This document shows, one piece after another, positions 2,122-64,000 of a stretch of 64,000 nt of DNA. A program made the position numbers and the translations under genes. The notes beneath the pieces were generated by a model. The model was not told the origin of the DNA, did not search any database, and saw only the letters and a list, made by a program, of their open reading frames with translations. How positions within the stretch are numbered: the stretch's first letter is position 1; each line of letters starts with the position of its first letter. Origin of the DNA: Bugula neritina (taxonomy: Eukaryota > Animalia > Bryozoa). The stretch is taken from NCBI GenBank assembly GCA_964035545.1, contig OZ037766.1, positions 24,544,126 through 24,608,125 on the forward strand, read 5' to 3'.

Positions 2122-3020
2122 GTAATTTGGTGCAATTAACTTGAACTTGAAGCGTTTGAAAGTCATTGCATTAGCATGTCAAAAACAAATTAAAATTCAT
2201 GTTTGTATTAAACCGATTCATTATCAATTATGAATTATGATTATCATTATGATCATTATAATTATTATATTTTAATATATTGTAATTCAAATTGCTATTG
2301 TTATTATAATTATTACATTTAATTTTAATAATATTCAATTTAATATTATTAAATAATTAATATTCTTAATTTTATAGATCATTGAATAATATAAACAATA
2401 ACATAATAATAATAATAATATTAATGATATACTTCTATTTTACATTTGAACTTGAAAGTTGAAGCAATACTTTTACTTTTACTCGTACTCATAGAGATAG
2501 TGGTAGTCATCTGATTTTGGCATGTACCTACTTATAGCCGTACTGATACTGATACAGTGATAGTAGTAGAATAGTACAACTACATGCAACAGTAGAATTT
2601 ATATCAATTTAAATTTAAAACTATTACTAAGAGACAACAGTAATTTACTTTTAGTTTTACTTTTAGTAATGCTATTACTTATGCATTTATTTAATTCCAT
2701 TGCTATTGCCTATTAGACTTAGTTATAGTATTAGTATTACTATTAGTATTGCTACTAGTATTATAATAAATACAATAATTATAATTTATAAACAACTATT
2801 AGTATTATTGTTATTATTATTAGACTATTACTAGTAGTAGTACTATTAGTATCAGTAATACTAATAGTATTACTAATAAGTAGTAAATGTAAGTATCAGA
2901 ACAGTATCACTATGATGGTATACTTTTGTTATATTATGTTATCATTATGTTAATGTTATATGCTTATAAATGAAATTACTTGCTACAAATTATTATTATG
3001 GCTGTGTCATTTTCAAACAG
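2122..3020 (+). repeat. Putative ADCY9 5'UTR first intron filled with degenerate 6-bp-periodic sequence
   Basis: Donor G|GTAATT at 2122 and acceptor TTTCAAACAG at 3020. Interior examples: tttact tttagt tttact tttagt; agtatt agtatt actatt agtatt. Assignment to ADCY9 is inferred from position and strand. Confidence 0.6.
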
Positions 3021-30900: not shown

Positions 30901-31793
30901 CCTGGAAAATATTAGTTGACGTATTTCACATTCTTATGTTACATGTTAATCACAAATCTTCATAAATAAAGACCCAGTAACAAATAATCTCAAATGAGAG
31001 CCAAGAAAGCATTAAGCCGAGGATTCTATTTGAGATAAAGTAATTTGGTAGACAAGCTCTGCCAATACTCTAAACACAATAGCTCAACTTTTACACTGGT
31101 AACCATGTATTTTACAGAAATTGCAAAAAATGAACCATGAACTTTCTTTATTGCTGATACTGAATGTAGATTAGATTTCATGTAGACAACAAAACCCTCC
31201 CTAATGAGAGATAGGCTGCATTGAATATGGAATCAGAGTATCTAATTCTGGTTTGATATGTAAAAAGCAGCTTGCCTAGCTTTACAGACAGACAAACAGC
31301 TTTTTGTTTACAGCTAGAGTTGTAAATATGAGCCAATCTCCAACAAATCTGTAACGCACCAAATCATATACCCTACCTTCAATTCCTCATCACCAATCTT
31401 TACGATTTTCTCCCTAAAGTCAACACCGATAGTTGCCTCCACTTTCCTTGGAAATTGCCCTTCACAGAACCTGTAGGTGAGACATGTCTTGCCCACATTA
31501 GAGTCTCCTATCACAATCACTTTGAATATACGAGGATCTTTCTTGGGATTTGTTCCAGTAGATTTACTTTGTGAGCTGCTGTTATCGGATGAGCTGTCCA
31601 TGCTGAATTTAGTGTCATTTGCCAAAGAGCTACTGGTAGTAGTGGAAGAGCTAGTAGTAGTAGTGGAAGAGTCACTGACAGTAACAGTTGCAGCTTTACT
31701 GGTAGTAACAGCGGTATTGTCAACAGAGTTTGTAGAATGTTCGGTTAATTTAGTGACACTTGTATCAAGTGCATCATCACTCACAGCAGTCAT
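27967..31793 (-). CDS. RAB33: Ras-related protein Rab33, 298 aa
   Basis: Exons 31793-31377, 30084-30037, 29540-29396, 28623-28463, 28092-27967. Motifs [68 protein letters not shown], and C-terminal CGC* prenylation motif. Non-coding exon 1 inferred upstream of the GTGAGT donor at 33389. Confidence 0.95.
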
Positions 31794-31851
31794 TACTTGC
31801 AGAGGGTCAACTGGCTATTCATTAAATAGTCTTTTTTACAAGCAGATTTCC

Positions 31852-33389
31852 CTAGAAAAAAATGAGAAAGTAAAAAGTTGAATGTGGACAAATTTAAAAT
31901 AGGAACAATTTGCAACACAATATATTTAGGCGATAACCTGTTAGAGTTTATATTAAGTTCAGTCAGATTTAATGAAAATTTATTTTATTTCATATTTTCA
32001 CATTTTAGTTTACTATCACCACCTGCAATTGTAAAGCTAAGCAAAAATTTCAGTTTCTGTAAGTGCCATTTTGATTTTGATTGCCATTCATTGCGATATC
32101 GATTGTCCAAGACTAATAATCATCACAATACGAATACCTCAAAGTTTAAGATGAAAAAGAATAAATAAGAACAAATTTCAACTAATACCCCTAGTTAAAT
32201 AAATAATAAAATACTACTAGTCTAGTACTAGTAGTAATACTAACCATTATACTTAGTCGGTACACTTACTCATTAGACTAATGATTAGATGGAAATGAAA
32301 ATCAAAAACTAAAAGTAAAAATTAAAATCATAAAAATGAAAATATTTGTAATGCTAATAGTAATACTAATAGTAATACTTATACAGTATAACTTACAGCT
32401 ATACTTACTATCACTATAAGTATAACATTAACATTAACTTTAAGTTTAACATAAACTATAACTATACCTTATACTATAAGTATAAGTATGACTAATAAAT
32501 TATTAGCATTACTAATACTAATAGTAACACTAATGTTAATACTACTAGTAATACTAAAGTTAAAGTTATACTTATACTTAATCATAATTGATATTAGTAA
32601 TACTAATGCCAATGGTGATAGTAATAAGTATTACTAATAGTAATAATAAAATTAAATATAATATTATTAATTATTATTATAAATATAATTATTATATTTA
32701 TTGATAGTAAATTCAATAAATACAATTTAATTATAATAATCATACTGATACTATTATCTAAAATATAAATTAACTATTATGTTTTAATTGATTGAATTTA
32801 TTTATTATTTAATAATTATAAAGTTAATCTAATTTAAATCTAATATGTAATAACTATGATTTAATTTTAATCATCAATTTAAAATTAATCATTAATCATA
32901 ATCGATTATCAATATCATAATGATAATCATAATTTTAAAGATATCAATAATCATAATGATTAGTCATAATCAAAATAATCATGATATTGATAATAATAAA
33001 TAATTATGATAAACATAATCATAATGTAAATGATAATGTAAATCCCAATTGAATGTATATTGTAATTGTATATTTTGAAAATGTGAGAATTTAAAACAAT
33101 ATGAATATTTCATTTGCAATATATTTGCACGATGCCTTCGTAGTTGTTATTTTGATTGTCTTACAGTTACTCATTGTCGTACCCATAGTCATTATGATTG
33201 CGGTAGTTACTTTGAAGTTTCAGTTTGATTATGATGGTGACTCAGCTAGCGTACACTCATACTTATAGTTATAAATACACGCAATCAGCAAAGCATGAAG
33301 TTGTTGTGATCACGTGGTTTTAAAAAAGCCATTTTTTTCAATAGCATAAACTTATTTGAATATTTTTAAAAAAATATTTATAAACTCAC
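31852..33389 (-). repeat. Rab33 5'UTR first intron with degenerate 6-bp-periodic sequence (about 32080-33280)
   Basis: Donor GTGAGT at 33389, acceptor TTTCTAG at 31852. Example from 32413: actata agtata acatta acatta acttta agttta acataa actata actata. Confidence 0.75.
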
Positions 33390-33583
33390 GCAAAATACAT
33401 TTATAATTATTGAGTTGAGGGAAAAATAAATTATCACCTCGAAATCTGCATCGCTCTTTAGCGTCAAAACGAGATTTTTATTGTAGAAGCTGCCATGTTC
33501 CTATAATTCATGCGGAGCAACTCTTCATTATTAGGTCAATCTTTCATAAATGTTCCCACATCGTGAATAGATTTTTTGCTACA
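33390..33583. promoter_or_regulatory. Compact bidirectional promoter and first exons shared by Rab33 and NAA15
   Basis: Only 194 bp separate the Rab33 exon-1 donor (33389) from the NAA15 ATG (33584). YY1-like GCTGCCATGTT at 33489-33499; CpG-richer than the flanks. Confidence 0.7.
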
Positions 33584-36500
33584 ATGCCTTCTAAAGATCC
33601 CCTGCCATCAAAAGAGAATACTCTTTTTAAGAAAATATTGGTAAGTTATGCGTAAATTCCTTGTATTTCACTATTTTCATTTTAATCACAATCAAATATA
33701 ATGATAATGAATATCATCAATGATAAATGGGCGAAGCCGAATGGCTATCCCGGAGAGTGAGCCCGAGGCTGATAAACTCTTGAAATTTAAGTCATTTACA
33801 ATTAATTCTAAATGTAAAACACTAACAGTAACACAGTCACTGATCAGGCTCAGCAATCACAATCACAATGGGCATGGCAATCTAAATCTAACGCAAAAAG
33901 AGATATTCATATTGAACGTAAAACTAAATAAAAATATCAATATGAATAATAAATTAATAATTTAAATTATTTACTGAATATCATTATTGATAAATTATCA
34001 ATATCATTATGATCATGGTTTGTTACCTGTCAATACCTGTCGATTTTATTTCCACACTGGACCTCCCTAGAGGGAAGAAGGGGTGTGCCTCATATAAAAA
34101 ACTAAGTTGTCAGTACTTGGACAGTAATCTAAAAAGTGTTAGCATTCTTGTGCAGATTAACTTAACAGGCTAACTAGCCTGTCTGTGTGTGATCAGTGCT
34201 GATCCTCATATCTCTTATTGTTCTTGGGAGAAAACTATAAAGATACCCATTCCTGTTCGCTCTCACTGATCTGGGAAATCCTGCAACCTGAGACCGAGTC
34301 TGTGCAGTGCTTGTGGTCCGCTGATCGGCATTATCATTATGATTATGATATTAATTATTATTATTTATTAATATGATTAATAAATTCAAATTGAAATTTC
34401 AAGAAATAAGGATAAGGAACAATTTTCAATTAACTGTTTAATAATTTAATTTTATATGAAATAAAAATAATTAATAGTATTAAATTTAATATTATTTATA
34501 AATATTGTCATAAAATTAAATGTCTGAGACTCATGTGGAACTAAAAGTAGATGCATAGCAGTATCATTATAATAGCCTAAATAGGTAATAAATTCTAGTG
34601 GTAATCATCATCATCATGTAAATTGCAATTATGAAATTGGATCATGGTCATTGTGATAGTTGTGTTTATAATGTTTATTATAATTAATATTATGAAAAAT
34701 AATTGCCCCCACTGGGAATCGAACCCGAGACCTCTGGCTTGCAAGCAAGTGTGCTAACCATTACACCACTGGGACCACTGGGTAAACTTATCACTACATC
34801 CCACCCAGTTCTCTGAACTCCACTGGCCTATCTACTACTCCTTCAGTCTTCAGGCTCTCCTGGCCTCTCAACCCCCTCAGTCTTCAGGCTCTCCTAGCCT
34901 CTCAACTCCCTCGGAGTACTACTACTGCTACACTTCACTACAGGCTGAAATAGCTTGAAAAATAATTGCCCCCACTAGGAATGGAACCCGCAACCTCTGG
35001 CTTGCAAGCAAGTGTGCTAACCATTACACCTTGGGGACCACTGGGTAAACTTATCACTACATATTATGCTAGTAAAAATAAAATTAATCATAATGATAAT
35101 GTATTTCTATTTGAAATTAATGACCGGTAGTGTTGGTCATACTCATATTGATAGTGACACTACTATTAGCACTACTACTGATAAGGGATAGACTGATGCT
35201 GATTGTGATAGTAATTAGTGATATTCATACTAAAAATAAAATTCTGGCAACTGCAATGAATACATAATATGATCTTAGAGTTACTGGTAGTGATACTGAT
35301 AGTGATAGCCTTAAGCATAGGGTTTAAAGTTAAAGTTAACCCAATACTAAAAATACTAATTCTAAGTGTAATGATAATATTAATAGTTATAGACAGAGTG
35401 AGAGTTGACCTGCTTATAATTATATTAATATGGTTATGTAATATGTATTAGATAGATCATTCATGTTTTGCATATTTTTTGTCAGTCTGCTATATATGTT
35501 TATTATAGAAATGTTATGAAGTCAAACAGTACAGGCAAGGCCTCAAACTAGCCAAACAAATTCTCTCTAATCCCAAGTTTGCTGAACATGGAGGTAGGCT
35601 GATGCCCTTTATTGACATTGGATTTAGTTTTGCATTATTTTGACACAACATATAGTTTTCAATTCACATATTTTGGTAATTCCTAAATCTTATGAGCAAG
35701 TAATATGTGAAAAGTTTATTAATCTGGTTTGATGCATATTTGTATTTTGTGTAAGCACAAAAACTAATGTATGAGGATTTATAAAATGAGTTCACACATG
35801 CTGGCGTAACATTGTAGCACAACATAGGTAATATAATGAAGTAGAACTAGCGTTACTTCAAACCCATAAATTTTATGAGATTGTTATTGTGTTTGTTATA
35901 TTTTTTACTTTGCTTTCAGAAACACTGGCTATGAAAGGCCTTATATTAAATTGTGTGTCGCGCAAGGAAGAGGCATATGATCACGTAAAAAGGGGGTTGA
36001 GAAACGACCTTACTAGCCATGTCTGCTGGCACGTGTTTGGGCTGCTCCAGAGGTCCGACCGAAAGTACGACGAGGCCATCAAAGCGTACAGGAATGCCCT
36101 GAGGTGGGACAAGGATAACCTGCAGATAATGAGGGACCTCTCCCTGCTGCAGATACAAATGAGAGACTATGACGGATATCGGGTAAGTTTACTGCTGGAC
36201 ATTCAACACTTAGTACCTGCCTTAGCAAGTCCCTAAAATAATTGAGAATCTAATTAACAGAGAGAATTGAAAATTATAACAGAATATCATATGCTGTCAT
36301 GCGCACTATTTAGTACTTTTCTTATACAGTTGAAATGTTGTCTGTTCATGTTATGTATGGCTCTGTGTGACTCTTTCAAGCCAGGCAACTCTTCTCAAAC
36401 TTACCTACTTCCTGTTTTATAGGAAACCAGACAGAGGTTGTTGGAGCTGAGACCGGGTCAAAGGGCGTCCTGGATTGGCTATGCAATATCATGGCATTTG

Positions 36501-39500
36501 CTGAAGGACTATGAAATGGCTTTAGCTGTCATAGAAGAATTCAGAAAGACGCTAAACGTATGACATTGCATTTCTAATTTGGTAAACTTTGATACAGTTA
36601 GTGTTGTGTATATTTTATCGGTAACTGTATATAACGTAGCAACAAAAATTTTACAGCTGCAATACATCGTTTAAATCAATATATTATGCAAATTATTATG
36701 TTTCTATGGAATGATTCAAATTTTAAAATATGCTAAAGCAGTTTTTATATAGTTATTTATTGTTTACTTACTTTTGAATTTTACTTACTGTTTCATTGTA
36801 CTTACTTTTATAATCTACTTACTGTTCTGTTCTTCTTGATGTTTATGGTTGATATATTGATTACAATAATGAGTATGTTTTACACAGCCCAAGCCGTATG
36901 ATTATGAGTACAGTGAACTCATTCTATACCAAAGTTCTATATTAGAAGAGGCATGCCGTTACCAAGACGCCATCAATCACCTGCAGAAGTACGAGAAAGA
37001 TATTGTAGACAAGCTGTTTCTAGAGGAGTCTCGTGCCAGGCTGTACCAACTCCTGGGCGACACCTCCAGCTCTGCTGCTGTATATAAAAGTATGCGTTCT
37101 CTCACTTTAGTCATCTCACTTTAGTCACATAAATCTGTCTTTAATGAGTAACACAGATCACCTCCTTCCCTCTTATATGTCTGCCAATGTGAAATCGGCC
37201 ACTGCTTTTATTTGCTGGTAACTAGAATTGTTAATTTGTTAAAAGGTTGTGTAAAATATTGTTTGATTGCCTTTTGCTAAGTTTCTCTTTATCCTAGTTT
37301 ATGACGTGTTCAGGTAGTCACCCAAACTCTTACCACTCAATTTGGAAAGGGCTTGTCAGTGTTTAGATAGCTTCTGGGCATCTGCTTTATTTATTATATT
37401 TGCTATATTATATTATATTTCATATTTTGTTTTAGACTTAATAGAGCGAAATCCTGAAAACTCATCATATTATAGAGGGCTAGAGAGCTGCTGTAATTTA
37501 GAGACAATCGAAGTTCGGCAAAAGATATATAGTGATGTTTTGGAACAGCAGCCTCGTGCATCTTTACCTAAAAAATTACCACTTACTTTTCTTACCGGTT
37601 AGTGCTTTTCCTTACCGGTTAGTGCTTTTACTTACTGGTTAGTGCGCTTTTCTTTAGTGGTTAGTGCTTTTCCTTACTCAAGGAGGCTTGTTTCTTCAGT
37701 TGCATTCCTATTTCCTTATCTCTTCTACCCCAGCATTTCTCTCCCCGTTAGCACTGTCTTGTTATTAATTTTTTTCTCTCTGCCTCTTCTTTCCTGAAAT
37801 TACTCCTATTTCACCCACTCTATGTCACAGAATACTATATTTGAGCATTTTCAGTGCTCCTTCTCTCACAATTTTTCTACCTTGGACACCTATTTGGTGC
37901 CTACCTAATAATTTTAGGTTTTTGTGTTTCAAAATCTTATCTTGAACTCATTTGTCTACCGTTATAGATCCTGAGTTTTGGCTTCTTTCAGATTGCATAT
38001 TTTTCCTTTGCAATTTCCACTTACATGAGGAATGTTTTGTGATGTTTCCATATATTACTGTATTCACAAAGTTTCTTACTATTTGATTATATACTTCTTT
38101 TGATATTCAAGTTCCAAACCCCTTTCTCTAAGGCACGATATGCTTTCAGGTGACATGTTCCGCGACCACGTAGACGAGTATCTAAGGCGGAGTCTGAGAA
38201 AAGGTGTGCCGTCTCTCTTCACGTCTCTCAAACCACTCTACACAGACAGCAGTAAAGTCAGCATGATTCAGCAGCTTACCACCACCTACTATAGAACTCT
38301 AATAGATAAACAGCTCTTTCATCCTGAAGGTAATAACAGCATATTTTATGAATATGTAAAAGTAAATCATGGCTGCTGTAGCTTCTGTTTCTATTTGTAA
38401 ATGTTTTGAAAAATAAAGTATTGAAAAAGGGAGTTTGTTGATGTGGAAGTGAACTATGCTGAATGAGATATTGCATCATCATTGTTATTAATCATTGGCA
38501 AGGTAAGTGCCTGACTGTGTTTGAGCCAACTTGAAATATTTGAGTTAAATCTTCCTCCAACTTGTATTGATCTTGATATCTGATCAACGCATGTTTCACT
38601 CCTATAAGCCAGATAAACAAGACTCTACTCTATTGAAGTCACTGTGTTTTACACAACATGCTTTACTGAGCTCCGATAACTCTCGCATTCTCTCATTACC
38701 AAGTATTATCAGCAGGTTTAAAACATTGACATTTTACTTTATGCTATATGTCATGGGGTCTCTACTGCTCTATCGTCTTTATATCTCTCAAGCAGCCCAC
38801 AACATTATTTCCATTGATGAATTGGCACTCGGTGGCATTCAACTTTGAATGCTGTGATGTAATGAAGATGTTTTCAAGTGCTGGCATAAATGACATTGCG
38901 TGGTGTTTGGGGTTTGCCTCCACGTGTAAAACATGGAGTTGTTTTATCTCTTCACGGTATTGTGCGTGAGTAGGGGCAGTTTTGTCTACATCCTAGCCCT
39001 ACTCTCTCTTTTAGCTGTAGCTCGGATTCTTCATTTTTAGACACTATAGAGAGCAATGACGGGGAGCTGGAGCCACCAACCACATTGCTGTGGACCCAGG
39101 CCTACCTTGCTCAGCACTATGATTATCTGGGGGACTTCAAGCAGGCATTTCACCATATCAATGAGGCTCTGGATGCAACGCCCACTCTCCCAGAACTCCA
39201 GATGATCAAGGGCAAGATTTTCAAGGTAACTCTTTACGGAGCAGCTTATTGATAGTGCACATGCTGTGATGCTCTATAAAGTTGCCATAAATAGAGAAAA
39301 ACAAAATATTCATTTTTTTTATCAGTTCTCACCTTTCCTTTGAGTCCAAAACTTTAGTTGGAAATTTCCCCAAACCACTCTTATGGTGTAAGCTGAAGAA
39401 AAACATTTTTTTAATTTTTTCTACAAGTTTATATTTGTAATATTTGATTGAAGTAGCAATGTAGTTTACTAGTTCATGCTAAGCACGTAGGTAACTGGTT

Positions 39501-42500
39501 TGTATGGCGTTGTGTAGCACGCAGGTAACATGCACCTGGCTGCCCAGCACCTAGACGAGGCCCAGGCTATGGACACAGCCGACAGGTACATTAACTGCGT
39601 CTGCGCCAAGTATATGCTGAGAAACAACCAGGTGAAGGAGGCTGAAGCAATGTGCCAGAACTTCACCCGCGAAGGGGCCTCCGCAGCTGACAATCTTAAC
39701 GAAATGCAGTGCATGTGGTTTCAGACAGAATGTGCGGCAGCGTACAGTCGTAGGCAGCAATGGGGTGACGCCCTCAGACACTGTCATCAAGTTGATAAGG
39801 CGAGTGTGAATTTTTTGTACTCTGCTCTTGGTCTGTAGATGAACTTTCCTAATATACTTTTCTGGTCGTTTCCTTTTATATATAATGGTATATCCTTTTA
39901 TTTATATATATATATATATATATCAATTTCTTGTCAACATGTTCTCTTTTGTCATCGAAGGCTTTGCGTACCTTTGTTCTGTTACATGTATGTTGATACT
40001 AGGCTTACTCTTCTCTCTGCAGCACTTCACTGAAATCACTGAGGATCAGTTTGACTTTCACACGTATTGCCTGAGAAAGTTTACTCTGCGCTCCTATGTG
40101 TCTCTTCTCAGACTAGAGGATGTCCTTCGCAACCATAGGTTTTACTTTAAGGCAGCTTCCATAGCTATAAAGATTTACCTCCACCTGCATAGTCACCCGG
40201 TGGGCGATGAGACTAGTCACAGTGAATCAAATCCTAGTGAGTACTTCCAGTTACGGCACTGTGGTGCTTGTAATGTTCACAGAGCTTTGAAAATATGTTC
40301 AACTCTGGCATTTTATGTCACTCAAAAGCTGGAGGTCTACTCAACTTAACCGTCATTATACTGCACATGCTGTAAAATGTATTCTATAAAGCCAATTGAT
40401 GTATAAATTTTTATTCAATGTTTGTAAGGCACTTTTGCTCTGCTAGATATTGGTATGATGCACATATCACCAGGCTGAGTTCTGTAAATCTTAGGCTTCC
40501 TAATGTAAGGTTGATGGGTTACAAAGACATTTAATAAACTGAAACTTGTTGTACAGTAATTGGTATCACTAACTACTGTAAATAGATATTATATTGTCTC
40601 TTGAATTTGCCATTACATTTACAGACTTTAATGTGTTAACTTGTACTCTGGTCTTGTGCTTTATCCACTGGACCAGAGTTTCATAGCATACCCCACTAGT
40701 GTCGTCCTCGCTTGTTATTGTTTAAATCACACATCTTGACAAGTATAAAGTTTTTATGCCCAAGGCACTCCTGCATTTTCTTTATCAGCGTATGCACACC
40801 TGTGTTATCAGCTCAAACTTACCTGTGCTAGGTAACCTATCTGCCAGCGAACTAAAGAAACTCAAGAACAAACAGAGAAAAGCCCAGAAGAAGGCAGCAG
40901 AAGAAAAGGCGGCAGCCGAAGAAGCAGCTAAGCGCCAGACGACTGCTGATAAGAGTAACAAAGCTTCTGGTGCTGATGCTGACAGTGAGGTCAGCAAAAA
41001 GGTGAGTTGGTTGTAGATGTGAGCTTCGGTGTTGGTTTCATCATACTTGATGCACTCTGTATGAAATAATATAGTCTGGAGATTAGTGTATGATCGTCTC
41101 TTTAAGGAACAGTTGGGAAATGGTAAAGTGTTTATCAATTACCCAATTGTTTTTGAGCAGATTTGACTAGTTACATTTAAGTTGTAATAAACTATCTAGA
41201 ATCTAGATATAACTTGGCTAAATACAGTTTCAGTGTTGTGTGTCCATACAGTTTGGTTTTCTAACTAATTTGGCGTCTTCCATTAATTCAAGATATCAGC
41301 TCACCTTTGACCCTAGCATTAGGGAATAAAGGCTAATTATTGCTAACATTTATTGCATGTTTTTTTTCTTAGCAGTGTGAAAACTAACTGCTAGGATCAT
41401 TTAAAACGTAGGCTATATATGCTGCTAAGTCAGAAAAGGAATATAGCTACTTTGCTAGACTTATCAAAAGTCAACTTTACTGCCTATTATAAGATGTTGG
41501 ACTTCAGAAATTGAAATAGCCATTTTCATCATGGTATGAAGACTAGTCATAATATCTGGCAGTAGCATAACTTGCCCTCACTCTGGGGAGTGGTGAAATA
41601 TTGATTCAACAAATATTTCTAATTCATTGATGTCTGTATGATTAACTAATATAACTATCAGCTACTAGTCACTCGCCTGGTCAAATTCAAATCGATTATA
41701 ATATAATGTGTAAAGTTATTGTTACATTTATTTCGTTTGATTCTACACTTCAATTGTCAAGCTTGTGTAATCATATTGCAAGTATAAAACTAAACGCGGA
41801 TTTTATTTAGCTTATTTTAAAGTTCAAACTATTCAATTTGAATATGCAAAATATGTTCAAAATCATTATTTATTTTAGTAATTAGCCACAATAAGAACTA
41901 ATAATGTGATTGTCATAATATTGACTGAGATATCAAAAATAATTGAAATTGAGTTTGCTAAACAAAAATTATTTGCATATGAGTGGTAGTCATTAATAAT
42001 TTTAATTTACCAAGTATGCCAACATTAACTGATAGTTATGGTCACCTTTGGTCACCTTTCACCACCGTGGTCCTGCGCGGTGGCGGGATTAACTGATAGT
42101 TATAGTAATGATAATTATTACCTCTATTTGTGGTGTAAGCTACGGTATGTTTACCTCAACAGTTAATTCTTCACCATACTGAATCTCACTATTGGGTTGC
42201 CCAAGCTCATGAATTAATTGAAGACATGTGTGGACAAAATATACTCGATTTTGTTGGGCATATAACTCCAAAGCTGTGTTTGAGGTTTAGCCAATATGTT
42301 TCTGCAGATCTTAATACTACATAAGTGTAGCTTGTCATCTCTTCTTTAATGTGGTAATAGAGCTCTACAAATGTTCTCACTCTAGAAAGAGTTTCTGTCT
42401 ATAACCGACTCTTTTTGTACGTTATTCAACAAATATGGTGGTGCTTCGTATTAGCTTACAAATTATTGCAGCAATTTATGGAGTATTATCGCGGTTTGCT

Positions 42501-44922
42501 TTGTAAGGATAAGAAAGTGATAGAATGTCTAAAAGGTAATGTTCACTGCTTGTTACAGAGCGACGAACTTCTGCCCAGTAAACTGGAGAGGTGTGCAGAC
42601 CCTCTGGAACAAGCCATCCGCTTTCTCGTTCCCCTCCAGACTCTCTGCTCTCATAAGATTGAGTCTCACATCTTTGCCTATGAAATCTACTCGAGGAGAG
42701 GTTGGTTACTGCCCCTTCTTCAAGTATCTGGTTATATGGAACTTGGTCTTGGGATTGTCATCAAGTAACTTCATGGCTCCACACCAACTAGCTACAGTGC
42801 TGCTAAACTGTAGGCCTTGTCATTTTTGAGCTATATACATTTTTCTACCTTAGACTAAATATAACAAAGGGAAAAAAAATCTTATTTTGAATAAGCAAGT
42901 TTTTGCTTGCTGGATTTCATTGCTGTACCAGTTAGCAGGGCTAGCTAACACTTCACTTTTCAATATATTTTCTGTCTCGTTTGGAGCCGTTGTAAGTTAG
43001 ATGTGTTTGTCAAGTATTTTATCTCTTGTATAACTTCCTTGACCCAATGTCTGCTGCATATTTAGTAAATAATGTAGTTTCCTGATGTGTGTTTATTTAG
43101 TATAATAACAGTCATGTGTTGTCTGGACTAGTTCTGTGTATTTTCAATACAGGCAAGCCACTGCTCATGCTCAAGGCTATTAAGGGTGGATACAACCTCC
43201 ATACTCGTGACCCTAGATTCCATGTCTGTATGGTGAAGTTCCTCATTTACGGTAAGCCCTGTGGTGACATAGTAGTGTACTTATGTAACCATACCATGTT
43301 GTTATTGGGTAGCATAGTTATTTACATCTATCTATATATATGCACCAATTTATTTTCTAAAACAAGACTGATTGAACATACAACCCTCAAACAGTCTGAA
43401 GATGATAGCTATGATATCTTAAAGTATTTTATTGCTGGATAAATGAAGTGTGTCGGGGATTCTTTATTATTTTGTAACCTCCTCGTAGTGAGAGCTGCGA
43501 GTAACCTGCCGGACTCTGTCAAGGAAGTGCTGGATAAAGAGATGTCATCAATTTACAACAACGTCACGCCCCAGTCTCTCAACAACAAATTCCTAGATGA
43601 TAATAAGTCTTCCCTTCCACATAGATTAGCTGGTGAGTTGTCTACTCTCCCTGTTGAGTATTCTAATGTCTGGTTGGGTGACTCCAATATGTCTAAGGTT
43701 TTATATTTTACACGAATTGAGAAGCAGAAATTACTTGTGAATATTTCTGGATCTTCAAGTAACTGATATCTAATGAGCTGCCACACGGTGTCTGTGTTAC
43801 AATGGATTTTTACAATTGCAAGAGAAATATAAAGTTTTTTGTTGGTGTTATTAGTGTAGTTTATTGATATTGCTGCCGATATCTCACACCACATACTCGT
43901 ACTCGTACCCCCTTCCCCTGATTGTCCTAGGGTGCCCATCATACCTTATCAAGTTATGTTCATGTTGTCACCAGTCTAGTTTATACACTTGACTGAGCAC
44001 CACTGAACACAAGTGGTTTGGTTTACTTTGTAGCTGCCCAAGCTATGTATTATATGGACCAATCATGTCAAACTGCTGCTCTGGAACTCGCTTGCTCATT
44101 GGATAATTCACTCTCTGGCATCACTATTGAGGTATGTTCTGTTTTCGCTTCAACTACTCTACTGGTAGAGACAGCAGCAGTAGTAGTAGCAGTAGTAGTA
44201 GTAGGGCGGTGATGGTGGTAGTACTACTCATGCCTCTGCTACTTTAAACATATTCATTTTAATTTTAAGTTAAATTTTATATTTAATTAAGAAATATTTT
44301 TGTAGGATTTCTTGCATATTTATTTCTGACCGTAGATTTTTTCTTCTTCAAACAAGTTAATTGCACATTCGAGTGTTTTATTCAAGAAAACAGCTTCATT
44401 GAAATAAAATATGCAGCCATTTGATTTTTGGTTATCATGAAACTTCATGGCATGCAACAAGTTAGCAATGTATTGTGAAGTGTCAGTCATCACTACCTCT
44501 ACCTGCATTCTTACACACATAGAACTAATTTTCTAGTTATAGTATTAGCTAAAATGTGCTGAAGTGGTTTGAAAGATAAATAGTACCTTCAACATGTTGG
44601 TCAAATTGTTTTGATTATGTATTTTTCATAACATTGTAATTTGGGTCAGCCTATCCTTCACTGGTTGTAGTCAGATTGTTCCACGACTGTAAAGTCATGC
44701 TCTATATTTTAGAATTGTTCTGAAGTTTATGCCTCTTTGACGAAGCAAGATTTTGGTGAATGTTCAGAGAAGATAGACTCTTACAAGAAGTCTTGTCACC
44801 AGCTGTTTCCATTCTCCTCGGTGTTCTCCCCAGAACCCATAGCGGAGAAACCTAGTGAGGAGGTGGTGTGCAACGGGGTGAACTCTGGCCACCATGACCC
44901 TCTCACCCAACATGAACAATAG
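33584..44922 (+). CDS. NAA15: N-alpha-acetyltransferase 15/16, NatA auxiliary subunit, 875 aa
   Basis: Exons 33584-33640, 35509-35593, 35920-36182, 36423-36557, 36888-37089, 37436-37597, 38150-38329, 39041-39225, 39518-39799, 40023-40236, 40832-41001, 42559-42700, 43153-43251, 43489-43632, 44034-44131, 44713-44922 (2628 nt). [87 protein letters not shown]. Confidence 0.96.
33641..35508 (+). repeat. NAA15 first intron with degenerate 6-bp-periodic sequence, interrupted by two insertions
   Basis: Examples: gcaatc acaatc acaatg ggcatg gcaatc taaatc (about 33852); ttactg gtagtg atactg atagtg atagcc (35281). Confidence 0.8.
34693..35061 (-). mobile_element. TRIM (miniature non-autonomous LTR retrotransposon) with tRNA-derived LTRs
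   Basis: Two 106-bp direct repeats (34693-34798, 34956-35061; 7 mismatches), each TG...CA; TSD TATTA at 34688-34692 and 35062-35066; 157-bp non-coding interior with a 2x34-bp repeat; minus-strand Pol III A box TGGTGTAATGG, B box GGTTCGATTCC and T5 terminator inside the LTR. Confidence 0.85.
37586..37677 (+). repeat. About 20-bp tandem repeat x4 containing the NAA15 exon-6 donor
   Basis: Units CTTTTC(C)TTACCGGTTAGTG; the true donor at 37598 lies in unit 1. Confidence 0.85.
42040..42087 (-). mobile_element. 48-bp retroposed 3' fragment (stem-loop plus tandem tail) with 16-bp target-site duplication
   Basis: ATTAACTGATAGTTAT at 42024-42039 and 42088-42103 flanks a GC-rich insert with a CCACCG...CGGTGG stem and (GGTCACCTTT)2. 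Confidence 0.65.
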
Positions 44923-45999
44923 GCTTCTACAACTTCACCTGTAGATTATTGCAACTCTTGGGTTGAAATGCCATTTGCATGCTTTTAGACAGAAAGTTGA
45001 TCTGTTGGTACAATAAGTTATTGGTAACTGGCGATGTTTGTAAATTGTTTTAACTATTTTGCTGTATACACTCTATGTTGAAAAATATTATATGGCTGGT
45101 ATAATGATTGGAATCCCCAAGTACTGTTGCATTTTTTGATTCACTTTTATTGTTAAAATAGAATTTTGTCAACTTCCAAGTGTTCAGTGCTTTTGTATGC
45201 CTGTGTGGCTAATCAACAGGAAATAAACAGCTTACCATTCTTGTAGATAACATAACTCCTTCTATGAAATAGTATGATGCTTTAATTATGGTTCTTGCAG
45301 TTTTACAATTTTAGTGACCAAATAATATTGACAGGATTTCCAGCAACATTAGTTATTAGGCGATGAGAGTTTTGGGTAATAAATGATGGGGCATTTCAAT
45401 CTTCAGTTACTTATAGCTGCTATCATTTATTCCCAAGTCATACAACTTTCAATCAAATATATAACAATTTCCTGATATTACAGAAGACACAACTTAACTT
45501 GTTGAATAAATTATGTCGCTTGCTATTAAAGAAATCTAATATTAACCACTAAAATTTTTCATTTCATCCTATCAAAGCAATTTAAACCATTAAATTCAAT
45601 TAACTCAATAATTTGTTACAATATTGATTGCTTCAAACTATTGCGTGTGTCTTGCACCATATTTATAACTAAGAATTGTAATTTGAAAGACCATTATTTA
45701 ACTGCACAGGTATATGAAAAAGGTACATGCAAGAACCAGTCTTAGAAGGAACAATGTGTTCCTCTTATAGGAGGTGGGGCGCATACTTTAGCTGGTCATT
45801 GTAAAACAGATAACCTGCTATGGGTGGTCGTACTATGTGGAATATAAGCATTTGATGCTGCTTTACACCATTTCAACTGAACTGTTGGTGGAGAGGTTAC
45901 ATATTGAAGTCAAACTGGATATCAGAAATACTGACCAACATGGCCGTAAGTGGCATAGTGTTTGATATTCTTGGTAATGGTCACTACTGCATACACAGC

Positions 46000-46103
46000 T
46001 GTAGTAATGAGATTACCCAGTTATAGTCTTGTGGTGCTTGCTTGCAAGCTGGAGGTCTTAGCTTCATTTAATATATAACAGCAAACAGTGAGATATTTTA
46101 CCA
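46000..46103 (+). mobile_element. Degenerate solo-LTR-like copy of the tRNA-LTR TRIM
   Basis: TGTAGTAATGAGATTACCCAGT vs LTR start TGTAGTGATAAGTTTACCCAGT; CTTGCTTGCAAGCTGGAGGTCT vs CTTGCTTGCAAGCCAGAGGTCT. Right end approximate. Confidence 0.6.
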
Positions 46104-46133
46104 TACAGTGCATACTTTGGTATGTATTTTTAT

Positions 46134-48168
46134 TCATTTCTTAGAATAGGTTACACTTCGAATAATTATGCCTGTGATGCCTGTGGCCATAGCTGTAAAC
46201 CATAGTATTCTGCTAGCCTGTAGTAATGACTTGATCAGCTTCTGCTCGTGGTTCCCTGAGGCTTTAAATTGTATAGCCTGAGCTACTGTGTTTATAAACC
46301 ACCCTCCTGTCATTAGCCAGTAGGACTACAAAAGCATGTAAAATCACAAAACATCATCACTAGCCAACCGTTAGAATGCAAGAGTATGTTATTTAATTGC
46401 CATGAAATAAAGCCTGAGATTGTACACACTCACCAAGGTTGGGGGCCGGAGTGGTATCACATCGCCAATAAGAGGCACTGCTATTATTGGAACAGCAAAC
46501 CATTGCTGTGCTGCATAAATAGTTTTAATCTTCTACATGAAACAATACATGGTATTTAGTATTTATCATATATATTTATAGACTGTCTGCGCCTAAGAAA
46601 TTTATTCTACAACTTCAGACGCAATGCAGATTATGTCATTAATTGGCGATTAACATTTTACTTGACTGTACGTTATTGTAAGAAACTTTGTGTCAATGCA
46701 TATCACCTAAAACATAACGAAATCTATCCTTATACAGGCTAGTAACTTCACTAAAAATAATAAAATGAGAAACGTTTTTTGTGTACTGCTCTATTTAATT
46801 ACATAAAGTAAATGTTTATATACCACTGCATCTATCTTCAGAGTTAATTGAAAGAAATTATAGGATTTTATTGGTGTGAGAAATATAAGTTTACATTATT
46901 GTTCACTTGATAAATTAAATAGTATAAACAAAAAAAAGTTTCTCGCTTATCAATTTTTAATACAAAATCTGTGTTGTTAGGCTTTGGAATAAATTTTTTA
47001 GTATAAAATATTCTTTCAATAGAAATAAAGACAATAATTAAAAGGCTAGCTAAGTTGAAGAGTTAAAAACTGAAATTGTATAAATGGAGATATGCGATAG
47101 TTAGAAAACTTACTCTGTATGTATTGCAAGAAATTTGTTTGCTGGCATGGGCACATCTTCCTATAATAATATCATGTGCGTGTGTAGGTATATGTGTCTG
47201 CATATGTGTATGTGTATGCATGTGTATATATGCAAAAAAATATGCATATGTATATTATGCCCATGTGTATGTGTATGTGTACGTGTACATGTACATGTAC
47301 GTGTACGTGTATGTGTATGTATACATCCCTCATTTAAAAATACAACGGCTCATTTTTGTTATAGGCTAATATATAGACGATTGTAGAGATTTTAATTGAG
47401 CTGTTACACTGAATGCATAGATCTTATTCATTTCAGTTTCCCAATTTTGATGGATCTGCGCAACAACTTTTAGAAAACAGTTTTAACTACTTAGGCCATA
47501 GTTAAACTATAATTATCATAATTCCAAAAATTCCTTAATTTTTTTCTCTTAGTTTATCAGTATAAATCCATCATGTCTCATCTTTTGATGGAGGATTTTG
47601 CAGAAGCTAGGTAATACTATAACCAAATAACCAAATATGTTATGTCTTACCTAATGATTTGACTCCATAACTTCCAGTAAACGCCACCCATGCAAATATT
47701 GCTGTGTTGTATTTTAGTCTATGCGAAGCTTCAGAAAAAAGAGATAAAACGGCGAAACCACAACAGTTTATATTTGGTGGTCGCTTGCTGCCCTCTTGTG
47801 ACAAACCATTCCCCTTGTGGACTATACCATGTGAGTTTGGTAACTTCTTAAAGCCTGATTGACATGAGTGCAACTTAAGTTTTTATTGAATTGGGGTTGA
47901 TATAAAATAACCTTACTATAAATGCTAGATATGGTAAAACTTAGAACTAGTTAATAACTTTAGTATAAATCGTTTATATAACTAAATTAAATAAAGCTGG
48001 TGCAAAAGCCATGTGTATTTGCAAAAAAGAAAGTTGCAATTAAGAAATGAATACTCAAAACACTATAATTTTACAAAATTATTAAGCAGCTTGTTGCTGT
48101 CATTCATTAACCAGTCTACCTGTATAATATGTTTATGTATACTCACCCTGATCACCAACTACTGGCAT
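46134..48168 (-). CDS. Uncharacterised multi-pass membrane protein, about 187 aa (5 coding exons)
   Basis: Exons 48168-48147, 47854-47651, 47160-47114, 46532-46434, 46325-46134; donors GTGAGT, GTAAGA, GTAAGT, GTGAGT; phases 1,1,0,0 give one open frame of 564 nt ending in TGA overlapped by AATAAA. Start codon uncertain. Confidence 0.72.
47175..47325. repeat. Alternating purine-pyrimidine (GTGTAT/ATGTAC)-type simple repeat
   Basis: Direct inspection; within an intron of the hidden gene. Confidence 0.85.
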
Positions 48169-54691: not shown

Positions 54692-55372
54692 CTGCAAAAG
54701 ACACAAAAACAATTTTTAGCATATATAAATTGATAAGAACTGTATCTATTTCTGCTATCCTATTTACCATTCTTCCTTTCTCTATTAAACCTACAGTTGC
54801 TTCTAGGTCTCATTCATCCTTAGTTTTTTATAATTACAATTTAAACATCATTATTAAATTTTATTTATTGATGTTGAAATTATTTATAATAGTATATTGT
54901 TATAATTGCAATAAAATTATTATTAAAAAAAGTAAAACTAAAACTAAAAGTATTATAATTTCAATTTATAAAAAATATAGTGATAGAGCCAGAGGCCCAG
55001 TCCCAGGGTGAGGGTCCCAACAGATACTGATACGAATACTATTAGAAGCTTTTCAAAAGCCAAAAGTAAAAGAGAAGACAACAGTTCAGGGTGAAAGTCA
55101 AAATGAAAATACATCAAATTTAATTACAAATTAAAATTTGATCATAAAAATAAAACTAGAAACTTAAAGTCAAAGTGATTCGCCTTCGACTTCGTGTCTT
55201 TTCAACTTCAAGCCTCCTAAGCCCAGAAGACTAATAATACTAACATCAACATGCCTAAGTGCAAAATTTTAGACACTACTGTAAGACTTTAAAGTCACTT
55301 TTTTTACAATCGCAATAGATAAATCATTATAACGACATTGAGTATAGTCATCACTATCAATATTATACTTAC
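54692..55372 (-). repeat. ST13 5'UTR first intron with degenerate 6-bp-periodic sequence
   Basis: Donor GTAAGT at 55372, acceptor TTTGCAG at 54692. Examples on + strand: aaaagt aaaact aaaact aaaagt; gataga gccaga ggccca gtccca gggtga gggtcc. Confidence 0.75.
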
Positions 55373-55915
55373 TCCAACTGAAACTCTGTCTCAGTAAAAT
55401 TAAAAAGAGAAGTTTGAATTTTCTCCTATCTTCACGCTTGTTGCGAAAATAAAACTAGTTAATTAATGGAATCGCTGACTTTGCTTTTTCTAGAAAATAA
55501 TTTAGAATACTCTTAAACAAAACCAATTATAACCATTAAAGTGTAGCTACACATACATACTTTAAAATTTATAAACATGTAAATTATAGTTTAAAAGTTT
55601 TAGTTCAACAATTATAACAGCCACACTGCAATAAGCTTCACCGAAAGAAGACAACTTTGATTCGACATCCATAATGTGTTCCAAAGTTTCAAATCTTTTA
55701 TGGGTATTTGCTTAAAATTAATTTAAAATTTGCTTAAAAATAATAAAGCAAGTGTTATAATTTATAAACAGATGCAAGAAACACGAGTGCTTAGACTTAG
55801 TCAAAAGATGTGCTGGTATCATTTATGTTTGTATTAAACTTATTATAGTTTGTTCCTTGCATAAGTTTTCGTAAATACTTCACCATGCAAAGAGGTATTT
55901 AGGTATTCAAAAATA

Positions 55916-56125: not shown

Positions 56126-57988
56126 TAAGTATTATTGAACAAATTTTCAAACTTTCATGAGTGTCTAAAAATTTTACATGTCATCAGTGACAATCAATTT
56201 GGTAAATGTAGAAATAAGAGATGGAGTGAGTAGTTATAATATAACATTTTATTATCTAACTTTAAAGACTACTATAACAGAAGTTAAACTTATCATGCAA
56301 ATAATAAACAGTAGGTACTAGCTGGTATTTGTAATATGGAGAGGTATACAAATGTTGCTGTAGCTATGATAACACAGTATATAAATATGACATTTACTCT
56401 ATGTATAGTAAAATGTACAATTATATAAGTAATGATGAATCAGAATCGTAACGTCACCATAGTGAGTGAAAAGTCATCAACAAGCAATCTGAAATTTCAA
56501 ACCATTTCAAGATGATGTTTGCACAAAATAATTGTTTTAGTATAGAACTCTTAAAATACTTACAAGTCTATTCAATCACACCAAGTTGGCTGTCTAATAA
56601 AATGCTATAAACCACATTATACTTCAAACATAACTGGTTCATTATATGAAAAATCTTGTAAAACGTGTCGCAGGTTAGAATGATTGTTATTCGAGGCGTG
56701 AATGATTCTTAATAGATAGATTCAGCATCAGCTGTATAGTTGCTGATATGCGGATATTTCCGCTTGGTAGACAACTCCATAAAAAGAACAAACTATTCCA
56801 ACACATGGTATACTACAGGATAAATTTTGTAATTACACCCACATTTTACTGGCCATAGAGCAATTAACTAGACATAAATCAAGATTTGAGACGGATGGCT
56901 GAGCATCTGGTGATAGTAACAATGTTTATGTTTGTATGGTAGTAACACACATTTCCTAGTCATGCTTCTATGTTGTAACACACAGGCAACATGAGTTCAA
57001 TTTTTAAAAAAGATTTATTGCGTTCTAAACAGTGAGTAAATATATTATTTCAAGATACAATATAACGAATTTATGGAAATTATGCTTATATAGAATTAGT
57101 GATGCTAAAAGGTGATTAATATCTAAAACATAATATTTGAATGTTTTCAATCAATGTGTTTAACTGCTTTTTAACTACAAGCAATAAACTGAACATAGGA
57201 AATATATAATACTTCTATGAAATGCTGTTATAGACTTATAATCACTAATAAGTACTGTTTTGAGCTTTGTTGGCTAAACAATTAATACATTTCAAACTGA
57301 GTGTTTGCTAGTTCGGTTGTTAGCTATTAGGGTTGGATATCAGTATTTATGTTAGAATATTAATAATGGTCAAATGATTTTATATTCATATGTTCACTAT
57401 ATTATATGTCATTTTAGAATAAAATTAATTAAAATGTTTAAGTGAACAGTATTATTGGCTTCCTTCCATCAAAATAACTTAATACTCTTTGTACATTTTG
57501 AAAGTTTGCACAAAGTAGATATATTGTAAACATTTGCAACACAAGAGAGTTGTCAACATAAGATAATAAAATTTGATTTTAATATAAAAAACATGAGAAA
57601 AAACTGATAACTCTATACATATAAAGGTACTATTATGCATATGTGCTAACAAATACTAATTACTATTAGTAATAGCAATTAACACATTTTTCAACTGGGT
57701 GCTTGTTAGCTCATGTGTATACTTTTGTTAATTGTTATAATGCAATAACGATTTAGTTTGATCACCATTTATTTATATATGTTCACTACAACAGTACTTC
57801 ATGTCAAGATCAGGTATTAATCAGGTAATTTTGCTGACTTAACTCTTGCTGTGCACTATAAGATTAAAGGTTTTAGATATATACAATGTAATTTTAATTT
57901 TTTATGTAATTCTAATGAAGATTTCAAAAAATTTAAAAAAAAACAATGCATATCTGTTGCCAAAGTTACTAATTTGCATTTTTATAGA

Positions 57989-60900
57989 ATGGAAACTTCA
58001 TTCTCTCCTGAGGGTGCAAAGAAAAGAATAGCTCAACCCAGGAATATTGAAGAACAGGATCCTAACAATAAACACGGTCACATGCCTCAATGGAGTGAAA
58101 TGTTTAAATACAGAGTAAATTCTACTACCTTGGATGAGGTATTGTTTTAAAATGTTTATACTCACAAAGAAGGGTACAGCTTAAACCATCTACTAATTGA
58201 TGGTAGAGAATTATTTTAGATAGTAGCTTGCAGGTAGCAATTACTGAATTAGTGCACACAATTTTTTTCAATAATGATACACAATTCCTACTTTGTAATA
58301 TAATCTTATGTACTGTCAATTTAGATTCTTAAACAAACTCAAGCTATAAAAGTACCAATTCCCTTATAAACTTTGTGTATTATTTTTCACTGTATGCAAT
58401 ATATTTACTTTTATATTGACTTCATAAGTTCACTGCATATGATACTAACATAAATCCTGTGCATTTCTACTACTCATAAAAGAACAAAAATTGTTAATAA
58501 GCACTAAATGTTAATTGCATGTTGTGTATATGTACTGTAATATTAAAGCTAACATCTTATAGTTCATTGAGATGATAAATATACCCTTCCTCAGATATCT
58601 ATAATGCTTTAATATATTTTGATTCAGAATTTTGTTTTACTGTACATTTTGAGAGACTAAGTCTTGAGTGATATGCTTGCACTTAATGATTGCTAAGCAC
58701 AGCTGTTTAGTAGTCTACCGCTTACCAAGGTGTTATGGGTTAACTCTGTATAATTTAATGTATTGCTCGAAAAGTTAATATCTGATAAATTGATTTCCAG
58801 TAAAATATCGGCAATAATAATAAACTTCGTAAAGGGTGAGAAAACTTTGTTTTGAATGTAGATTTATCAATTATTTGTTAGTATTCATGCACAGTTGATG
58901 CTGTTATACTGCCTCTATAAAGACTATACTTTGCTGTATGATGGCAATGGCATAAATCAGTATAATTCTAACACATCTGCTCTCTAACCTTAATCAATGT
59001 TTCCACCTACATTGCTTGTTGGAATTTATTACCAACTCTTAAACTTTTTATCTGGTCACGTACAACCAAAACAGCTATCTAATATATAGTAATACTAATA
59101 ACCATGTTGTACACTGAAAATCTTTTTCCTTGATGTGTCAGATAAAATGCTAATAATAATTAATGAGGATAGTTCTAATGGCAATCTGGCTAAGGCTAAA
59201 TGGGCAGTGTATTGCGCAAATTCAAGTACACATTCACACCAAAAATCTTATGGAGAGATACAATATTTTAGTATTGAAGTATATTTGATAATTTAGTTTA
59301 TAAAACTTTATTAAACCACTACTGCAACTATAAACCTTTAAAGTTTAAACACAAGACTAAAGCAAATCAACTCTAATCTCAAAACTAGTACATTTATAAT
59401 AATTAGGTTAATACTGCATCTTAAAATACCTATGATGAGTGTTAGCTTGTAAAAAGTAAAAATTTGCATCACCAACTATAGTTGTTTGAGTTTTAACAGA
59501 AATTTTTTGACAAAAATGCTTTTAGTAAAAGAAATGAATTTGGAAATTTAAAGATAATTTTGAAAATGCTTAGTCAAATTGTTTTCTATTTTTTAAAAAT
59601 AAAATTTATAGGATGTTTGTTAATGTGTTGGAAAAATATAGCCCTTCAGCTGATTTAGTTCATATATAGCATACATACGTAATTTATTTTAAATCTGCTT
59701 TTAGATTCTCATTTAAAAAACTAAATTAATAATAGATAAATAAATTAAGGTAATTAATTCGTTTTTGCAATTTTGAAAAAGTCTTGTTATTGTTTTAAAA
59801 CATATGCATGTATGTCTTCACACAGTCTCGTATATATAAATTAAGTTAAACATTACATTTTAAGTCTTACAAGCATTTACAGTTTGCCAATCATTGATAT
59901 TACTCCTGGAGGCTATTTTACTCTGCAAATAAGCTCCTATTTTAAGTTATTTTAGATTCTTTCTGAAATTCAATTCTAATAAGATATATTATGTCTCTCT
60001 TTATTGAAAATATAAAAACTGTTTTAGTCTAAGAATTTGCTTTGTAAGAAAATGAAAAGATGATATATGTGTTCAGTGGTCAAAATATAAAGTCTGAAAA
60101 ATTTTAACTTGCTGACTACATTTGAGCAGTAGCTATATAGCCTAAAACTTAAACTCTGGTTCAGTTATTGCTACTCTGTTGAAATGGACCAATAAAAAGC
60201 TAGATATATAATTTTATTGTGAATTTTTAATTTAGCTTCAAGCCTCATTCTTGTAAAATACCTAAATGATGCCTTCGGGCTTAGAAGCTTTTGCCAACAT
60301 TTTTGTCATTCAAATGGTAAACTATTTATATATAATATTGAACAGTCAAATTACATAATTTATTAGCTACAGATTGTCACAAATTCACAGCTTATGGTAC
60401 ATCAATTCTTATACTGCAGCATTTTAGGATATCTGAATAAGAAAGTCTAAAAATTTTGATAAACACTGCTTATTATTATTTTTGAAATGCAAATCTATAT
60501 TGTATTGAACTTATTTAGTAAAATGTTGCTTTAAATAACATCATTACACAAAAACTCAATAAGGTTGATTGATATTTTTATAGCCAGTTGAAAAAGTAAG
60601 GGTAGCTGATGTAAGCAAAGACTTCTGTATCAGAACAACCTCTCAAGGAATAACACAAGTCTTCCAGGCACCACGTAAGTAAACAGTTTAAAATAAACAG
60701 GTGTTTAAATCTTTATTAAAAATTTAAAATATGATTCAAAATGTTGTTATGCATCACTGGCTAATTTATAGATAAAGTTACCACGTAAGCTGTTTTTAAA
60801 AACTTCCATTAATTTATGAAAATTATAGCTGATAATTTGACCTATAGTTGATAAGAAGAAGGCTATATATATATATATAACATAATTCATTAAAATAAAG

Positions 60901-63900: not shown

Positions 63901-64000
63901 ATGATGAGGGACCACTTTATAAACCAGTTGAATGGGTTGGAGCAGTAGTAGAAGTTCATGATATAGACATAGAGCCTACGCCACATGAAAGGGGCATACT
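57989..64000 (+). CDS. DEG/ENaC (ASIC/degenerin family) channel subunit, 5' part; runs off the window end
   Basis: Exons 57989-58138, 60584-60674, 61350-61499, 62837-62953, 63165-63347, 63841->64000, phases consistent. TM1 KKIFWFILTIAALGLLIAHLYYL, hallmark EFPAVTICN, GHQKEDLI, HGNCYTFN, GLELELNIEHYAY, GAVVEVHD. The first coding exon is less certain. Confidence 0.88.
60962..61022 (-). mobile_element. Diverged tRNA-like fragment related to the TRIM LTR
   Basis: Minus strand TGTAG...CAGTGTAATGGTTTGCATGCCAGCTTGCATGTTAGAGGTCCCGG aligns with LTR GGTGTAATGGTTAGCACACTTGCTTGCAAGCCAGAGGTCTCGG. Confidence 0.5.

Follow-up and report, generated by a model that had tools for sequence, protein, structure and literature searches.

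Chains of drifting hexamers behind promoters of the bryozoan Bugula neritina: possible stacked excision footprints of a hairpin-forming transposon

Background

What kind of process turns the DNA on both sides of a promoter into a chain of hexamers, each resembling its neighbour while the motif wanders along the chain? The question is raised by a stretch of 64,000 bp of the Bugula neritina genome (C2:24544126-24608125, below called the window), in which such tracts flank the shared promoter of the genes Rab33 and NAA15 and recur in ST13 and ADCY9. A sequence-only reading had described the tracts as periodic, free of a consensus, specific to first introns and without mutual homology, and had proposed either a mutational process coupled to transcription start sites, copying bases at a 6-nt offset, or a selected structural code comparable to the periodic A/T clusters (PATCs) of Caenorhabditis. 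Our data reveal a recurrent 6-bp insertion with inverted complementary bases at its junction, and we consider it about an even bet that the tracts arose as piled-up excision footprints of a transposon of hAT type that forms hairpins, with a 7-bp target site duplication (TSD) and a preference for chromatin downstream of active promoters.

The assembly comprises 216,009,554 bases, with the large contigs C1-C9; the published genome has nine chromosomes and 216.00 Mb (PMC11480708). Promoters and tract clusters were surveyed in 264 kb of contiguous sequence, in which exon positions are our own reading, and gene models were searched one exon at a time. Statistics of the unit event rest on 22 kb of pooled tract from 19 loci compared with 238 kb of control sequence; nine of the 19 loci were picked as best matches to a query tract and thus represent extreme cases. 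Identity at lag 6 was compared with dinucleotide shuffles. Pfam searches recognised a Ras-family gene, an adenylyl cyclase, NAA15, an STI1/TPR gene and a DEG/ENaC channel in the window, and the closest named orthologue came from the bryozoan Watersipora subatra. Rfam returned no match at 31000-34400, and ARAGORN found no tRNA. A search of the open literature, in which subscription journals are thinly covered, found no account of such tracts.

Results

At 32080-33300 lag-6 identity is 0.525, compared with 0.337 after shuffling (z +14.8); the excess amounts to z +8.9 at 33640-34700, +9.6 at 35070-35460, +11.0 at 2100-3000 and +9.4 at 54780-55400. The periodicity with peaks at lags 6 and 12 therefore stands in all four tracts named by the earlier reading (z +9 to +15), and so do the complementary swaps between neighbouring units, because G/C pairs at lag 6 reach 1.83 times expectation in tracts and 0.99 in controls. 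The signal falls off through lags 12, 18 and 24; controls are flat. The motif drifts as described, but "consensus-free" goes too far: where the tracts are densest, they approach (TAATA-S)n and its reverse complement, with the core S-TAWTA-S (S, G or C; W, A or T). The claim that the tracts lack homology and are no transposon family likewise holds in part. They have neither common termini nor colinear homology, and no terminal inverted repeat (TIR) with a TSD was found; yet they match one another patchily and on both strands at once, mostly at ~65-80% (~70% at 1,453 candidate places), and they are probably products of a transposase.

The pooled statistics establish the elementary change as a +6 insertion, in which y1..y5 is followed by comp(y2) comp(y1) y2 and then by y3 onwards. 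Written for a 7-mer x1..x7, the product is x1..x5 [x2' x1' x2] x3..x7 or its mirror x1..x5 [x6 x7' x6'] x3..x7, and at the junction lies an odd palindrome that has the flank base's complement as its centre. Several observations lead to this rule. Runs of lag-6 matches occur at 16.1 per kb for length 4 and 16.5 for length 5 and drop to 2.8 for length 6, a cliff that rules out plain duplication as the source. Among the runs of five, 70% of the boundaries are complement swaps (29% in controls), and 87% of the cores have complementary first and last bases (30% in controls); S-N5-S patterns with identical cores show a swap in 292 cases and no change in 163, against 33 and 958 in controls. After a flipped G/C flank, the base following the four-base core, counted on both strands, is comp(y2) in 667 of 697 cases, y2 in 13 and another base in 17. 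Even where y6 is unrelated, the base following the core is still comp(y2) (41 versus 4), and this persistence identifies the event as a +6 insertion with an odd palindrome. The middle base is G or C above chance only beside a G/C flank, the W-flanked pattern being at background genome-wide (2,313 versus 2,340 in the control), from which it follows that the middle base is derived from the flank by complementation. What the process adds is a duplicate of 4-5 bp plus inverted complementary junction bases; of the mutational process proposed earlier, the promoter-tied addition of 6 bp was upheld and the copying at a 6-nt offset was not. Reversing exact events takes out 797 units from the 22 kb, compared with 257 for perfect duplications and ~30 in shuffles. 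A weak version of the rule exists at lag 7 (30 versus about 11 expected).

Of 16 palindromes in tracts with arms of at least 11 bp, 15 have a one-base centre, an excess that stems in part from the lattice itself. One in the Rab33-side tract (Table 1) we read as a hairpin opened away from its tip, and the same may apply to a 407-bp palindrome in another tract (L008:1465-1871; 91%, arms of ~200 bp, single-base centre). Even-centred palindromes are not enriched, on which ground P nucleotides of the RAG type were rejected. A 6-bp TSD with both ends flipped was also tried, and 13 cases fit only this scheme, compared with 88 that fit only the one-sided class.

A chain grown by the rule predicts that two thirds of neighbouring units are swapped and that 1.5% of the quads are perfect, or 64% and 2.5% if 10% slippage is admitted. 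The observed swaps are 63.8% locally and 65% in the first 100 genome-wide matches to (TAATAS)4, of which there are 8,995 compared with 504 for the reversed control; perfect four-unit arrays make up 251 of the 8,995 (2.8%). Over 210 quads, which overlap and are not independent, the log-likelihood is -549.9 for the footprint rule without a fitted parameter, -582.2 for random G/C and -539.0 for the saturated model. Simulated on ordinary intron DNA without any target preference, the rule yields the peaks at lags 6 and 12, the cliff between 5 and 6, the complementary core ends and a complement excess at lags 2 and 4, the last of which had not been anticipated. Simulations of slippage or of random G/C insertion do not reproduce these statistics. 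A random or element-derived G/C spacer is rejected by the likelihood and by the background level of the W-flanked middle base.

The same numbers bear on ordinary hexanucleotide slippage in AT-rich DNA. Tandem Repeats Finder calls short period-6 arrays, the chain data can accommodate 5-10% of perfect copies, and cryptic simplicity and hexanucleotide microsatellites resemble the tracts in their short-period self-similarity and drifting motif. Slippage, however, predicts 5-7% swaps and runs of six or more, where 64% swaps and a cliff after five are seen; the differences between neighbouring units in B. neritina are complement swaps that obey a rule, and there is a deficit of perfect arrays. We give slippage practically no credence as the main process, in which role it is refuted.

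Within the surveyed sequence tracts make up 3.4%. All seven clusters touch a 500-bp window with a CpG observed/expected ratio (o/e) of at least 0.74, compared with a chance share of such windows of 18% (P about 7e-6, with a threshold picked after the data had been seen). On our exon reading, every cluster lies on the transcribed side and within about 1.5 kb of its promoter. A fifth tract, at about -1700 to -650 just outside the left edge of the window, follows another promoter. Rab33, ADCY9 and ST13 presumably begin with non-coding first exons. Footprint motifs, as we call the pattern left by the unit event, occur at 28-38 per kb in the tracts of 32040-35420 and at 1-2 per kb in gene bodies and in the DEG/ENaC cluster, where the earlier reading had likewise seen no tract. 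The Rab33-side tract alone has 48, with 3.3 expected. First-intron specificity was half right: the downstream introns of NAA15 are at background (1.0 motif per kb over 36184-48000), but in long first introns a tract occupies the first 1-1.3 kb only, and since the ADCY9 tract fills just the start of a long intron, it is the distance from the promoter that matters and not the rank of the intron. Exons are spared as claimed, the coding part of NAA15 exon 1 being free of footprints. If the 264 kb are typical, a rough extrapolation gives 5,000-6,000 promoters and 2x10^5 recognisable events genome-wide. The DEG/ENaC-like gene cluster (window 57000-64000 and L012-L015) contains duplicated segments, and no tracts over ~45 kb.

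The orthologous introns of Watersipora, and those of a planktonic species with the same gene order, carry no signal. A metagenome contig with this gene order, probably from a bryozoan (L034), has 14 motifs in NAA15 intron 1 where 0.8 are expected; its tract vocabulary differs and is GC-richer, and downstream the contig is at background. Another locus, L037, is weak (4 versus 1.0 expected). With one locus per species, the trait is lineage-restricted yet not unique to the B. neritina genome. In the same intron of L034 (1000-1560) there is an excess of lag-4 flip motifs (22 versus 6.7), possibly footprints of an element with a 5-bp TSD.

Position and distribution together speak to the selected structural or protein-binding code, a weak/strong lattice that ordinary mutation would generate and selection would retain. 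Such a code would be consistent with the place behind CpG-rich promoters in all seven clusters and with a G or C at each sixth base of AT-rich DNA, and PATCs are comparable as periodic, AT-rich, non-coding DNA in introns of broadly expressed genes. A weak/strong lattice nevertheless expects G or C at random, which the data reject (-582 versus -550), and it leaves the comp(y2) junction rule unexplained; tracts are missing from the orthologous introns of Watersipora and of another species, and insertions of long and short interspersed elements (LINEs, SINEs) and of a long terminal repeat (LTR) element into tracts are tolerated. Unlike PATCs, with their period of ~10, the tracts have a period of 6 and a flat or negative lag 10 and are not built of A/T clusters, and an insertion rule suffices for them. 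The PATC-like code is not needed, and we regard it as very unlikely.

At the Rab33/NAA15 locus itself (Table 1), the two genes lie head to head in all orthologous loci examined. NAA15 intron 1 (33641-35508) was delimited by homology with the loci of other species, and the last part of its tract stops short of the acceptor at 35508. Within the shared promoter, an E-box (CACGTG at 33311-33316) recurs between the orthologues in L033, L034 and L037; the same E-box is present at three tract-flanked promoters (here, in L025 and in L028). Two inserts interrupt the NAA15 tract. The first has at least 40 genomic copies, 18 others being 95-99% identical over ~300 bp, and was considered as a miniature inverted-repeat transposable element, which its LINE-like end rejects; we read it as the putative 3' end of a 5'-truncated LINE. 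The second, a SINE pair, has copies elsewhere at 80-94% and 5 footprint motifs per kb. Rab33 has a long, Ser/Thr-rich N-terminal extension, ~50 residues beyond that of Watersipora, and the DNA encoding it (31560-31793) has a local lag-6 signal and two footprint motifs; a gain of 6 bp keeps the reading frame, so that footprints might make disordered N-termini longer.

Table 1. Tracts, inserts and gene features in the window (positions in the window)
Feature	Position	Strand	Remarks
Tract of footprint motifs on the Rab33 side, mostly Rab33 intron 1 (minus strand)	32040-33290		z +14.8; 38 motifs/kb
Perfect palindrome, 11-bp arms, one-base centre	32679-32701		
Tract of footprint motifs in NAA15 intron 1, part one	33645-34020		35 motifs/kb
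Tract of footprint motifs in NAA15 intron 1, part two	34327-34690		38 motifs/kb
Tract of footprint motifs in NAA15 intron 1, last part	35061-35460		z +9.6; 28 motifs/kb
Tract behind the putative ADCY9 promoter	2100-3250		lag-6 z +11
Tract in ST13 intron 1 (gene on minus strand)	54800-55450		lag-6 z +9.4
Head-to-head shared promoter and 5' region	33291-33583		CpG o/e 1.18; almost without footprints
NAA15 exon 1, coding part	33584-33640	+	matches orthologous first exons; 0 footprints
NAA15 exon 2	35509-35593	+	homology to exon 2 in L034 and L039
Rab33 first coding exon, ATG at 31793	31374-31814	-	Pfam Ras; Watersipora orthologue P0161
Young repeat inside the NAA15 intron 1 tract	34024-34326	-	0 footprint motifs
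Tandem pair of tRNA-like SINE copies in the tract	34693-35064	-	8-bp flanking direct repeat

Elsewhere, an LTR retroelement of 5.9 kb (L015:8345 to L016:4268; LTRs 99.7% identical, a frame of 1,696 codons, 5-bp TSD) sits in a promoter-proximal tract and splits it. Among the contigs C10 and above, many small ones have Ras-family genes read through TAA/TAG, so that the assembly holds contaminants with a ciliate-like code. An open frame of 463 codons (L026:8349-9737, minus strand) has weak matches to nucleotidyltransferase folds (DUF294, SidM_N), and three paralogous frames of ~315 codons lie at L018:2341-3297, L019:5982-6938 and L021:5567-6496, the one scanned having no Pfam match.

Discussion

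The junctions bear three marks of a hAT footprint: a remnant of the target duplication, a palindrome centred on the complement of the flank, and junction bases that come from the flank and not from an element. In hATs the nick is made one base inside the flank. In the mechanism that we envisage, insertion would copy x1..x7 as a 7-bp target duplication, and excision would close both flanks as hairpins, in each of which the complement of the terminal base forms the tip. The two hairpins would then open into 3-nt 3' overhangs that overlap and are joined, the triplet of one strand being inherited. With a 7-bp duplication and overlapped overhangs the gain would always be 7-1 = 6, in two mirror products. 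Each product would again be a palindromic target, S-TA-W-TA-S, and because the products are good targets, events would stack in phase and build hexamer chains that drift and have their G/C swapped. Hairpins opened far from the tip, a rarer outcome, would leave long odd-centred palindromes and reverse the orientation of the chain. Purifying selection would clear exons, splice sites and the core promoter of scars, which would thus gather in the first neutral space, usually intron 1. The chemistry, the 7-bp stagger, the targeting and the part of selection are all reconstructed from the tracts and their likeness to known systems.

Several of these steps have precedents. In Ac/Ds excision, palindromes centred on the complement of the element-adjacent base mark the resolution of hairpins, and in Candida a single base at the fusion separates the two main Ac/Ds footprints (PMC5873905). 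Enzymes of the hAT, MULE and Transib/RAG groups place the hairpin on the flank (PMC5499845), the hAT element TcBuster favours transcription starts (PMC3499496), and Repbase contains hAT families annotated with a 7-bp TSD (PMC4455052). Footprints of Ac/Ds, TcBuster and Hermes accordingly resemble the unit event in the duplication remnant, the flank-complement palindrome, the two main products and the bias to transcription starts. For hATs with an 8-bp TSD, the same logic would give +7, in line with the weak lag-7 excess.

A number of points weigh against the stacked hAT-type footprints. TIR and TSD scans of 294 kb, including the 19 tract loci, found no element with a 7-bp TSD, and the sole hAT that was read has an 8-bp TSD. 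The extrapolated ~2x10^5 events require very many cycles of insertion and excision that left no resident copy. Known hAT scars are single, follow 8-bp TSDs and vary in length; those of B. neritina number dozens per locus, have a near-uniform gain in which +6 dominates, stay in phase over ~1 kb with no element left, imply a 7-bp duplication and probably occur at thousands of promoters. The simulation over-predicts runs of four (24-42 versus 16 per kb) and strict alternation, and it lacks the lag-3 peak, which probably needs a target preference for TA-n-TA. Finally, a 5-bp duplication with ends treated unequally yields the same products, although the symmetry of the inferred target S-TA-W-TA-S about its fourth base favours 7 bp over so lopsided a scheme.

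The genome contains 14 matches to the hAT dimerisation domain, some multi-copy with open frames (the multi-copy loci include C1:30462367, C3:28905230 and C5:1593917), and all but one are known as coordinates only; searches with DUF659 and DUF4371 were blank and carry no information either way. Some 92 kb to the right of the window end lies an apparently intact hAT of Buster/SPIN type (L021:2342-4934) with an 8-bp TSD, a tRNA-like SINE inside its intron and a 528-aa open frame common to two other loci; the family is probably young.

The lack of resident elements leads to another possibility, in which the chemistry is the same and there is no cargo: a transposase that has been domesticated or is tethered by the host (such as Kat1, RAG or ZBED proteins), or a transpososome that recleaves its own strand-transfer product, would run futile cycles of cutting and hairpin formation at active promoters. 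None of the tracts holds a resident element, the product is very uniform, and the restriction to the transcribed side of promoters is tight. Kat1 and RAG1/2 likewise make hairpin-capped breaks at host sites, and RAG is drawn to active promoter chromatin. The hairpins of RAG lead to even-centred palindromes, unlike the tracts, in which these are not enriched, and no gene of the Kat1 or RAG sort was identified. Kat1 is a domesticated hAT (PMC4763223), and several single-copy transposase loci of hAT and P type are present in the genome, those of P type on C8 and C3, as coordinates only. A 7-bp duplication, however, needs strand transfer and hence element ends. Moreover, young multi-copy hAT families are present (three identically scoring 563-aa frames and two of 528 aa), and a patchy distribution among species fits a mobile family. 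We therefore hold the cargo-free cycle to be rather unlikely.

A template switch in replication or repair near promoters, in which the polymerase copies two bases of the opposite strand and resumes five back, would need no element and would result in inverted junction bases, and promoter-proximal DNA is known to be break-prone. It requires, on the other hand, that the strand fold back on a loop of one base and that the gain be fixed at 6 bp, whereas the snap-back and template-switch products on record vary in length and have longer loops; the trait is also lineage-restricted, though repair enzymes are common to lineages. This origin appears decidedly improbable.

As for other transposon groups, P-type excision leaves element ends and not flipped flank bases; the B. 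neritina junctions contain flank-derived bases only. Galileo, of the P superfamily, has a 7-bp TSD with the target GTANTAC, and S-TA-W-TA-S includes GTATTAC (PMC4168063). The resemblance of the two consensus sequences is tempered by the fact that the process itself partly creates that of the tracts.

Conclusions

The kind of event that builds the tracts is known already; its scale, its uniformity, its phase-locking and its restriction to promoters seem not to have been described. Should a domesticated, promoter-tethered transposase be at work, it would mutate the germline of Bugula and some relatives continually, and ~3% of the genome would be a map of germline-active promoters written by its cargo-free cycles, perhaps with consequences for chromatin; we think this unlikely. 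The tracts represent a type of repetitive DNA distinct from satellites and transposons alike, most likely made up of accumulated repair scars. If stacked hairpin-excision footprints are the true explanation, we would know of no larger natural record of hairpin-end repair, and the tracts would directly illustrate the long-standing idea that sequence evolution is driven by excision footprints. They would provide a sequence-only marker for germline-active promoters, and they point to a transposase that strongly targets promoters and leaves a footprint of unusual uniformity.

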